NCBI GenBank assembly: GCA_964199315.1
Contig: OZ116699.1
Coordinates: 22,692,001-22,756,000 of the forward strand
Direction of reading: 5' to 3'
DNA length: 64,000 nucleotides
From: Orbicella franksi
Taxonomy: Eukaryota
This document shows positions 12,242-31,544 of this stretch, piece after piece. Below the pieces are notes generated by a model that worked only from the letters and a program-made list of their open reading frames with translations, had not been told where the DNA came from and searched no databases. The position numbers were made by a program, and so were the translations under genes. Each line of letters starts with the position of its first letter. Within the stretch, counting starts at the first letter, position 1.

Positions 12242-15200
12242 ATGTTAAAACCTGCATTAATTCTATTCCTAATCCAGGTAAGGAAATAATTGGTTGAATT
12301 CCGCCATAAAGGATATATTCGGCCTCATCTGATATTGATGTGTTGTGAATATCACTTCCTAGGTATGCATAATACGTCGACTTGGGATAAACACAGTAGG
12401 TAGGTAGATAAGAATCCATTTTTTTTTTAATTCCATGTCGTGAAGTGAATATCTTCTCTTCTTTTTCAATATGAAGATGCCACTATAGTCTGGATTACAG
12501 AAAAGGTCGACGTAAAGGGCAAAGAAACATAATTAGTTATCGGCCTAGATAGCTGTTTTTCTCCGTCGGTGGTCGACAAAGTAGCATCCATAAATTGAGT
12601 CTTCATATTTTAAACAAACTGAACGACAGATACGCTGATGGAATTGGGAATGCGTTATTAACGATTTCGCGGCTACTTTATTAATGCTCTAATAAAGAAG
12701 ATAATCGAACAATTGAAATTGTTGCATATACAGGTATCTGTTACTAATGCATCGTTTCATTCGCGAATGATGAACAATTGGATACCGTACTTCTGAGCCC
12801 CTAGTCCTTGAATTCTTTACACTGACAGTTCATTAGTATTGGTTTGACGGAAAATCGAGAATGACAGTTTCAAAGGAATCCGAAAGGAAAGAATTTTAAG
12901 CCACTCTAAGACTAAATTGAAGCCTTTCTTGTTTTAAAATGTGTGGCATTTGAAGTGGACTTTGACATCAGCAGCCTAGCCAAAAGTAAAATACCTTTTA
13001 ACCTAAGTTCATATTGACAAATCGGGCTTTCGGTTTAGGCTTAAACATGCTGTCGGCTTAGCGCTGAATACTCTGTAATGAAATAGGCACAAATGCCACT
13101 TCTTTCATCTTTCGATTGTCCAAAACGTCTGAAATTTTTTGCTACTTTGTTACTGAGCTCGAGTTGACACTTCGCTCGGCGGCCGGTAGGTTTTTCTTTC
13201 AAGGCCTGTCCCAAACTCCGGAAGGCTGGAATACCGAAAATTATAGGCCCGGAATCTTAAAACCTGGAACAATAAAATTTTATACATTTTTCAATACAGG
13301 AAAACGTTCGATTTGCTATCTCTGGGTCTTAAACAATTCGGGTGGTGTTCATTGCTGATCAAGAGTTTTCATACAAACGTAAAGCTTAGTTTGTTTTAAC
13401 TTGTTCTAATGCAAACTCTTACGAACAGAGAATGGATTGTTATAAAGAATTTAATAACATCATAATTAAATTTTAATTACACTTCCTGGGTATCCCGTGT
13501 CAGTATCAAACCTCATTTTCCTGCTATTTTTTTTTTTTTAACCTTCAAGCTTTTTGTCTTCCAATGGTACAATTTGCCCAGAATGCCAGGAAGGCCTTTG
13601 TTATACGAATGGTTGTTCTTTTATTATGGAACAAAACCGTCAGTAAATTGGCTGTATTGATATTCTTCATCTTTTGATGTTCTTGGTTTAATAGATCCCA
13701 CAAAGCTCGCTCTCAGTTTCTATCGACTTTGTTAGTTTAAGGCCTCGAACACAAACCTTCGCGCATGCATACGAATCTTGCTAATTGTATCCTTGTAGAA
13801 CCCCTGCTTCATTAGCAACTATGCAATTTGTATTTATTTTCAGCATGTAACTCTTTTTTGCAGATGGCGTCCTGTGCAACTCTACAGGAAGTTTTCCAGA
13901 TCAAAACGACTGCAGAAAGTTTTATAGTTGTTATCGAATTGGGACAGATGCCATTGATTACACCTGTCCTTCCGACAGACCTTTTTATCACGCAAAGGAA
14001 AAGGCATGTAGAAGCATTAGTAAAGGTATGCTTTGTTACAATATTACTTCTTCTCAGAATAATGTACATTAGCTATACACAAGCTATGAATACACAGATT
14101 GGGTGCAGACACTCATGGGTTCCTCGTGCAGAACATGTTAGGAACTAATTTAATTTAGCGATTTGAGGAGAGAATTTGCGGATACGTTGTTAACATAGAA
14201 GAGCCGATAGCAAGCAGAAATTCAATAACTATGGTAACCATCTGGCTATCTGTATTAGCATGCAACATATTATAACGAGAACGTCCTGAAGTTGTAAGCA
14301 TGCGATGGCCATGGGCTCATTAGCAGCGGATCACGTCATTTGTGTAGAGACTACCATAAATACAGGTGTTTTGTAAACTGATCTCCGGTTACACCCCCAG
14401 TGATGGGGCAACGGAGAGGTGGAGGTCTGGTTATGTTTGAGGATAAAGCTCTCAGTCTCGTATTGGAGCCAAGTTTTGTCTGTTCTATTGGTCTCTGAAG
14501 ATTGTATCTGCTGTAACAGATCCGAGCCTTGTGGAGCTAGCAAGGTGCCTCAGTCTTACCATGGTCATCGTGTTTGCCCAGGCAAAAACCTATTATCACA
14601 CATGTACAGCGACAACACGTCCGCAACTGAAAAATTACACAATATTAATCACTTCTTAAGTCCATAACTGACAGAAGAAGCCACAATCTGGATACAAGTT
14701 ACCCCTGACGTCATAACAATCGAAAGTGCTGATTTTAGCCTTCCAGTCTGCAAAAATTCTTGGTACATTACATCTCTTCATATACGTTATCACATTAAAC
14801 TTTGTCGCAAGCAACCAAAATTTCTAGTATAATACTTTGAGCTCCTGTAGAGCTTTAAACATGGGCGGTTGAGTAATCATTAATTGTTCATTTGCTATTT
14901 ACATCAGTTGTGTCATTTAGTAATAGAGAATTAGAAACAAAGGTGCATGATTACTAAATCGAATCAAGCTACATTTTAACTGTTTCTCCAGACCAAGCTG
15001 CATCTCTTTGTCCAATTTTACTGAGTCCAACTCCAACAGCTTCTTCGAGTGGGAGCCTGATCATGAGTCACAGTGAAATATCACCCTCCTCGCCAGTTAG
15101 TATGGTTTATAGCCAGTATACTACACTGCTCACTCAAGGCGTCATAATACCTTCGTCTTCAGGTAAAACAGTATTCTTATAGCCTTATTTTCTCGTTAGA

Positions 15201-31544: not shown

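Follow-up and report, generated by a model that had tools for sequence, protein, structure and literature searches.

Adhesion G-protein-coupled receptors (GPCRs) count as force sensors, with their specificity seated in the tip of the ectodomain. ADGRD1/GPR133, a vertebrate adhesion GPCR coupled to Gs, carries a laminin-G/pentraxin domain (PF13385), while the latrophilins (ADGRL/Cirl) carry a Gal_Lectin domain (PF02140). Chitin is perceived by receptors of other kinds, namely the LysM receptor kinases CERK1/CEBiP of plants and FIBCD1, TLR2 and LYSMD3 of vertebrates; to our knowledge none of these is a GPCR and none has a tethered agonist. Here we analyse a gene in a 64,000-nucleotide stretch of the stony coral Orbicella franksi (contig OZ116699.1, positions 22,692,001 to 22,756,000; hereafter the window, in whose coordinates all features are given) that joins these two worlds in one protein: a CBM14 domain, of the type found in chitin-binding proteins, stands at the tip of an adhesion GPCR. 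We propose that it belongs to a stony-coral lineage of adhesion GPCRs in which CBM14, borne on a stalk over a minimal GAIN domain, would act as a chitin-anchored tethered-agonist receptor. From sequence and predicted structures we give this reading a probability of about 0.5; the architecture itself is real, and we treat it as practically certain.

The comparison with the closest systems is uneven along the chain. ADGRD1 is the closest solved seven-transmembrane (7TM) domain (39-40% identity, root-mean-square deviation (rmsd) 2.0 Å, TM-score 0.88), the GPS cleavage motif HL/T (the slash marking the cut) occurs in both, and the coral orthologues are automatically named 'ADGRD1-like' by NCBI. 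The tethered-agonist peptide of ADGRD1 starts with the same seven residues as the coral one, TNFAILM. Unlike ADGRD1, whose vertebrate matches carry PF13385, none of the coral orthologues matched this domain, and CBM14 and a mucin-like stalk are found instead. Latrophilins and a set of coral paralogues with a C-type lectin domain (Lectin_C, PF00059) share with our protein a distal module of carbohydrate-binding type, GAIN/GPS and 7TM, with 35-40% identity over the GPS-7TM region, but their tips belong to other families and they fall in separate clades; compared with them, the CBM14 receptor is without an HRM or olfactomedin domain and its GAIN is much shorter. The tip is in turn like those of peritrophins and obstructors and like the CBM14 domains of CHIT1, tachycitin and Avr4 in its six-cysteine pattern, its CBM_14 match and its predicted fold, yet those are secreted matrix, enzyme or effector proteins, whereas the coral protein has a single copy on a signalling 7TM. 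The known chitin receptors resemble it only if chitin binding holds, in coupling a chitin-binding ectodomain to a membrane signalling or uptake module; their folds (LysM, fibrinogen-like, leucine-rich repeat) and outputs (kinase, endocytosis, TIR) are different.

One transcript from the CBM14 exon to the 7TM domain

The gene lies on the + strand and comprises 23 exons and 22 introns, running from an ATG at 12242 to a TGA at 31454-31456 and encoding a product of 737 amino acids. The window has about 38% G+C and no runs of N, with short exons and long introns. We placed the exons with tblastn, using orthologues, together with a search over frame-keeping GT/GC-AG pairs, and then corrected them to the base with a metatranscriptome contig of 2,955 nt (JGI 3300008045; hereafter L001). 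By BLAST, L001 is a spliced copy of window positions 12159-31929, and its source is the same species as the window or a very close one. Aligned with the concatenated exons including intron 4, it yielded one ungapped high-scoring segment pair of 2,939 nt at 99.59% identity, fixing 21 splice junctions to the base. On the same strand it bears the CBM14 open reading frame (ORF), which encodes P0002 (141 aa, 98% identical, the spliced product of exons 1-4), and downstream a 544-aa ORF with GPS and 7tm_2. This gapless match to the exon model puts the CBM14 exon together with the 7TM domain on one RNA.

A preliminary description, made from the window's letters, had proposed this chain of CBM14, Ser/Thr/Pro-rich stalk, GAIN/GPS and 7TM, and it is borne out by L001 and by full-length orthologues. 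The junctions 14025/14992 to 18886/22971, on which the proposal depended, are present on this single contig, and the CBM14 exon is neither a separate gene nor skipped, as L001 and the orthologues carry it in one chain with the 7TM. The count of 23 exons and the start at 12242 were both correct. The stop had been put at 31544, 88 nt too far: the TGA lies past a last intron of GC-AG type, and 31544 falls in the 3' untranslated region (UTR), in another frame. An in-frame stop is found in the 5'UTR upstream of the ATG, and the 737-aa model is 98-99% identical to L001, P0158 and P0237.

That a peritrophin-like gene and a neighbouring adhesion-GPCR gene were fused on paper, by the preliminary description or by a chimeric assembly, is hardly conceivable. 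For Orbicella faveolata, RefSeq does give the N-terminal part of the gene its own entry as an 'uncharacterized protein', but the 21 base-exact junctions on one RNA contig refute a two-gene artefact, and L001 is itself unlikely to be a computational chimera given its exact GT/GC-AG borders. Phase is continuous throughout, the GAIN exons are not preceded by a start codon or signal peptide of their own, and the same fusion is found in seven independent sequences from at least four genera.

The transcript data also bear on which product the gene mainly makes. Intron 4 (15163-15337, 175 nt), which contains an in-frame stop, is the only intron retained in L001, and the first ORF thereby ends at 141 aa. 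In XP_020629066.1 (P0237, 'uncharacterized protein LOC110066205' of O. faveolata) intron 4 is removed, as it is in all orthologues, and this 248-aa model runs into intron 7 (16132-16239). A pocilloporid-like contig protein of 311 aa (P0238) likewise stops resembling the orthologues shortly past the exon-6 region, which by eye suggests read-through into an intron. From RNA that retains introns or ends early, the 5' exons could chiefly make a short secreted CBM14-mucin protein, with the receptor as a minor read-through form, which we consider improbable: L001 runs on through every downstream exon into the 3'UTR and is thus a partly processed receptor mRNA and not a short transcript, relatives have uninterrupted full-length ORFs on transcript-sized contigs (P0153, P0155), and the gene models of Porites, Oculina and Desmophyllum are full length. 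The intron-terminated public sequences may be partly processed RNA or truncated annotation, or else real short secreted CBM14-mucin isoforms. As a practical consequence, the RefSeq model of the gene in Orbicella is split or truncated.

The layout extends to other corals. Full-length orthologues with the same order of domains were found in Porites lutea, P. harrisoni, P. evermanni, Desmophyllum pertusum and Oculina patagonica and on the transcript-sized contigs P0153 (755 aa, 2,697 nt) and P0155 (715 aa, 35 member sequences), so that the layout is seen at full length in at least six other stony-coral sources; P0156, P0157 and P0158 are partial transcript orthologues. In the Porites lutea protein (P0126, XP_073241164.1, 701 aa, 'adhesion G-protein coupled receptor D1-like') signal peptide, CBM14, Ser/Thr-rich linker, GPS and 7TM lie on a single chain. 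The orthologue group is sharply bounded, with members at 678 bits or more and the next paralogue at 335. The further along the chain, the higher the identity to the orthologues, from 42-69% in CBM14 and 29-68% in the stalk to 48-66% in GAIN, 72-87% in GPS and 78-93% in 7TM. The core CBM14 motifs and cysteines are kept, save for an extra adjacent cysteine in Porites harrisoni (P0151) that shifts the cysteine count. No orthologues from sea anemones, hydrozoans or bilaterians were returned by our searches, which were word-limited.

As a query against 1.84 billion representative proteins we also used the 53 residues of the CBM14 exon. Most matches were multi-repeat peritrophin-like proteins, and among the 150 best CBM14 relatives only P0126 carried the GAIN-7TM part, as judged with a hidden Markov model of that part; the fusion to a GPCR is therefore rare among close CBM14 domains. 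The pair CBM_14 and 7tm_2 did not occur in the 100 nearest named ESM Atlas clusters, where clusters of fewer than 50 members are invisible, and when the CBM14 portion of P0154, the Oculina orthologue, was used to look for the architecture in other phyla, only the query itself came back, just 19 candidates sharing words with it.

A full-text literature search found no published description of a CBM14-adhesion GPCR, nor anything relevant on the Orbicella locus, and a survey of choanoflagellate and metazoan GPCR ectodomains (PMC12716839) says nothing of chitin, CBM or lectin. The claim of novelty in the preliminary description therefore holds in part: the architecture appears undescribed, but the sequences are already public in RefSeq/UniProt under automatic names, and precomputed CBM_14, GPS and 7tm_2 matches are already listed for two orthologues, including XP_073241164.1.

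Cleavage motif, predicted GAIN fold and descent of the receptor

GAIN, up to the GPS, occupies residues 176-385 and is encoded by exons 7-12 (16045-16131, 16482-16656, 17308-17442, 18006-18066, 18568-18682 and 18834-18886, + strand), which reach the first GPS cysteine and were placed by orthologue alignment, L001 junctions, a predicted model and a Foldseek match to CD97 (8ikj). Intron 12 (18887-22970), which at 4,084 nt exceeds every other intron of the gene, divides the GPS-coding region between the exon with that first cysteine and exon 13, which holds HL/T, and is spliced out cleanly in L001. Exon 13 (22971-23106) encodes the GPS (residues 386-445), with C-A-C-D-H423-L424/T425 at residues 419-425. 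The H-L/T site lies at 23062-23070 and TNFAILM directly after the cut, at 23068-23088, both intact as had been noted before. Pfam GPS scored 52.1 bits on the window exon piece at 22861-23121 and 52-60 bits overall, and H, L and T are nearly invariant across 43 homologues.

The secretin-family 7TM (residues about 446-690) is spread over exons 14-17 (23657-23760, 24516-24618, 25427-25577, 25682-25748) and 18-21 (26073-26139, 26913-26998, 27627-27753, 30086-30127), all on the + strand and supported by L001 junctions. On single exon pieces of the window, 7tm_2 scored 27.5 bits (24436-24660), 45.8 bits (25427-25579) and 33.0 bits (27586-27801); on the translation of L001, 99% identical to the window model, it scored 186 bits over profile positions 3-250 of 250. 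The motifs 'EGxHLY' in transmembrane helix (TM) 3, 'PLLGxTWxFG' in TM6 and 'QGFFIF' in TM7 are retained, and we take them to be conserved class-B2 activation motifs.

For the fold of the ectodomain we used a full-length AlphaFold2 (AF2) model of P0154, which is 66-87% identical to the window protein. It contains CBM14, a disordered segment (94-186), three helices (195-269), a beta sandwich (277-445) and a 7TM with helix 8; in the GAIN region, the mean predicted local distance difference test (pLDDT) of 10-residue blocks was 46-86, mostly 70-86. Its top Foldseek match was full-length inactive CD97 (8ikj; 558 columns, E 2.8e-26), followed by the 7TM of ADGRD1/GPR133, including complexes with miniGs (7wu2) and miniG13 (9v0u); latrophilins ranked below ADGRD1. 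Against adhesion-GPCR 7TMs the 7TM fold reached TM-scores of 0.84-0.92. In the Pfam check suggested by the preliminary description CBM_14, GPS and 7tm_2 all matched, but the GAIN profile (PF16489) did not match in the coral receptors, and the fold was recovered from the predicted model of P0154. Since this model shows a GAIN fold that PF16489 does not match, the domain is reduced and divergent: in the prediction, helices and beta sandwich (195-445) form a helical subdomain A followed by the beta-sandwich. With the sequence prerequisites of autoproteolysis and tethered activation (HL/T and TNFAILM) intact, the protein probably works as a tethered-agonist adhesion GPCR.

We placed the family with a maximum-likelihood tree of the GPS-7TM region of 37 sequences, drawn only from the families that the searches returned. 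The CBM14 receptors formed a clade with 100/100 support on a long stem (0.68), in which the two Porites sequences were sister to the other five. Stony corals are divided into Complexa and Robusta, and under this division the position of Porites suggests that the receptor was inherited vertically from an early stony coral; the whole layout looks vertically conserved across the sampled stony corals. The clade sits in a polytomy with vertebrate ADGRD1, the latrophilins and a coral expansion whose members have C-type lectin tips or no recognised tip. Given this polytomy and the absence of the laminin-G domain that defines ADGRD1, the label 'ADGRD1-like' expresses similarity and not demonstrable orthology.

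The CBM14 tip and its candidate ligand

The mature protein would begin after a hydrophobic signal peptide (residues 1-24, hydrophobic segment 1-25), encoded by exon 1 (12242-12277), which gives the start codon and first 12 residues, is identical in P0002 and P0237 and ends at a GT donor with its junction in L001, and by exon 2 (12363-12399), which provides the remainder, ends in phase 1 and rests on the homology model and an L001 junction. The CBM14 domain follows at residues 25-88, with C29, C41, C47, C59, C73 and C85, a spacing of the C-x11-C-x5-C-x11-C-x13-C-x11-C type that has equivalent cysteine sets in the orthologues. The preliminary description had assigned all six cysteines to one exon. 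Exon 3 (13864-14025), a CBM14/peritrophin-A exon by Pfam and with its junctions in L001, holds five of them and C85 (15009-15011) opens exon 4 (14992-15162); the sixth cysteine claimed there was probably intronic read-through ('GMLC'). Intron 3 thus divides the domain between cysteines 5 and 6. Exon 4 continues into the stalk (residues 89-175), whose remainder is encoded by exons 5 (15338-15421) and 6 (15652-15710). Described earlier as Ser/Thr/Pro-rich, exons 4-6 indeed give 87 aa with 53% Ser/Thr/Pro, and the stalk is presumably O-glycosylated. Exons 3, 4 and 5, which carry CBM14 and stalk, are all of symmetric phase 1-1, a classical sign of shuffled extracellular modules and as expected for exon shuffling. 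No ligand module other than CBM14, which sits distally on this mucin-like stalk, can be recognised by sequence.

Several lines of evidence place the tip in the CBM14 family. The Pfam consensus core is intact (G-x-FPD-x-x-DC-x-KFY-x-C ... CP ... F/Y), and the window exon piece at 13851-14069 scored 23.8 bits against a cut-off of 22.1, a marginal match; among six full-length orthologues, four were above the cut-off (22.2-29.8 bits) and two below (17.9 and 18.0). An AF2 model of residues 23-92 of P0237, which differs from the window at one position, was built with 69 aligned domains and reached a pLDDT of 84. Against the PDB, its top 12 Foldseek matches were all of CBM14 type, at probabilities of 0.75-1.00, and unrelated folds appeared only from rank 13; the weak E-values (0.03-0.5) are in keeping with a domain of 50 residues. 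The matches included Blo t 12, tachycitin, Der p 23, the CBM14 domain of CHIT1 (rmsd 1.9 Å over 51 columns), Avr4 with chitohexaose and Aplysia EHEP. Membership of the CBM14 family and fold holds on this profile and model evidence.

Whether a CBM14 fold binds chitin is a separate matter, and a rival reading has to be weighed here: the architecture would be the same, but the tip would not bind chitin and would recognise another ligand (a protein, a polyphenol or another glycan), making the receptor one more domain-shuffled adhesion GPCR. We hold this to be possible, if rather unlikely. Chitin binding is lacking in EHEP and Der p 23 despite their CBM14 fold (PMC10619976), EHEP being among the best sequence and structure matches of the coral tip, and the residues critical to the binding of chitin lack conservation among the CBM14-fold binders (PMC10619976), so that binding cannot be called from sequence. 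The nearest coral paralogues bear C-type lectin domains in place of CBM14. On the other side, the coral domain retains the full Pfam consensus core, its closest relatives in the 1.84-billion-protein library are multi-repeat peritrophin-type proteins, and the best PDB profile matches include CBM14 domains of chitinases. On balance we lean slightly towards a tip that binds chitin or chito-oligomers.

A chitin-anchored tethered-agonist receptor, the mechano- or chemosensor supposed in the preliminary description, would work in four steps. The chain would cleave itself at HL/T; the CBM14 tip would anchor the N-terminal fragment to chitin or another polymer rich in N-acetylglucosamine; pull or shear on this anchor would displace the fragment and let TNFAILM enter the 7TM; and the 7TM would activate a G protein, with Gs and/or G12/13 the likeliest candidates if ADGRD1 is a guide. 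The chitin may be the coral's own, from skeletal or soft-tissue matrix, or foreign, from crustacean prey or fungi, and we regard the two as about equally possible. The finding of the family, by word-limited searches, only in skeleton-building corals slightly favours the animal's own chitin, and an endogenous ligand is plausible: chitin synthases are widespread across Cnidaria (PMC10216261), and in Pocillopora acuta no gene is more strongly enriched on the aboral side than a chitin synthase, in a study that also recalls old accounts of chitin from the skeletal matrix of pocilloporids (PMC13581030).

Besides the non-binding relatives of the fold and the variable residues of its binders, three further points weigh against this proposal. 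CBM_14 scores hover at the Pfam threshold (17.9-29.8 against 22.1 bits). The GAIN fold comes from the predicted model of an orthologue and is not matched by PF16489. No orthologue from Acropora or Montipora, which are also calcifiers, was returned by the word-limited searches, and this weakens a general role in sensing the skeleton.

The boldest form of the proposal is that this would be the first GPCR to bind chitin directly, turning a pull on chitin of the organic matrix beneath the calcifying epithelium, of prey or of fungi into second-messenger signalling through its tethered agonist; we put it forward as tentative and doubtful. In a weaker version, the receptor is a candidate for the long-sought chemoreceptors for N-acetylated sugars of cnidarian tentacles, which, judging from a title in the reference list of PMC11736139, were reported to stimulate adenylate cyclase. 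It speaks against this version that sea anemones, the animals in which that physiology was described, yielded no orthologue in the word-limited searches. Either way, a tip of a chitin-binding family suggests for an orphan receptor of invertebrates a candidate ligand that is concrete, abundant and cheap, and a small construct of 737 aa with one binding domain is convenient for the study of glycan anchors and tethered agonists. If chitin binding is true, animals would have a GPCR route of chitin sensing beside kinase-, TLR- and lectin-type receptors, and corals a candidate link from chitinous matrix to cell signalling, in which chitin, mechanics and calcification or feeding are joined. If it is false, the gene still offers a clean case of phase 1-1 exon shuffling in the large adhesion-GPCR repertoire of cnidarians.

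Gene ends and neighbouring sequences

At the 5' end, nucleotides 1-83 of L001 align to 12159-12241, which is the 5'UTR as far as this contig reaches. An alternative first exon at 13550-13642 (ATG 13564) is unused in L001 and in every orthologue, and four sequences considered as an upstream extension of the CBM14 exon (P0008, P0011, P0012 and P0014) look like stop-to-stop read-throughs of genomic DNA. With each exon compared to the whole window by tblastn, no second copy or paralogue of any piece of the gene was found elsewhere in it.

At the 3' end, the cytoplasmic tail (residues 691-737) is encoded by exon 22 (30640-30780), which ends at a GC donor (AAG/GCAAGT, the slash marking the exon border), and by the last four codons (ASSE) in exon 23 (31442-31929), which contains the TGA and 3'UTR to at least 31929. 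The last intron (30781-31441; AAG/GCAAGT ... TTTTAG/GC) is the one GC-AG intron of the gene, the other 21 being GT-AG. An in-frame stop lies only four codons past the donor, and a reading that ignores the donor ends, plausibly but wrongly, in KASLT. Our homology-only model had 22 exons with this very end; it was replaced, as L001 and P0158, which ends in KASSE, show exon 23 and the KASSE terminus. The 3' end of L001 coincides with a genomic run of about 24 A (31900-31923); internal priming, or the assembly stopping there, may therefore account for it, so that it need not be the true poly(A) site. Within the 3'UTR (31457-31929), one segment has a 78%-identical inverted copy at 56028-56094 and is probably a dispersed repeat.

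Downstream of the gene, the window contains two uninterrupted, intronless-looking ORFs for class-A (rhodopsin-family) GPCRs: one of 409 aa on the - strand at 34885-36111 (7tm_1, 134.5 bits), and one of 390 aa on the + strand at 52241-53410 (7tm_1, 158.7 bits).

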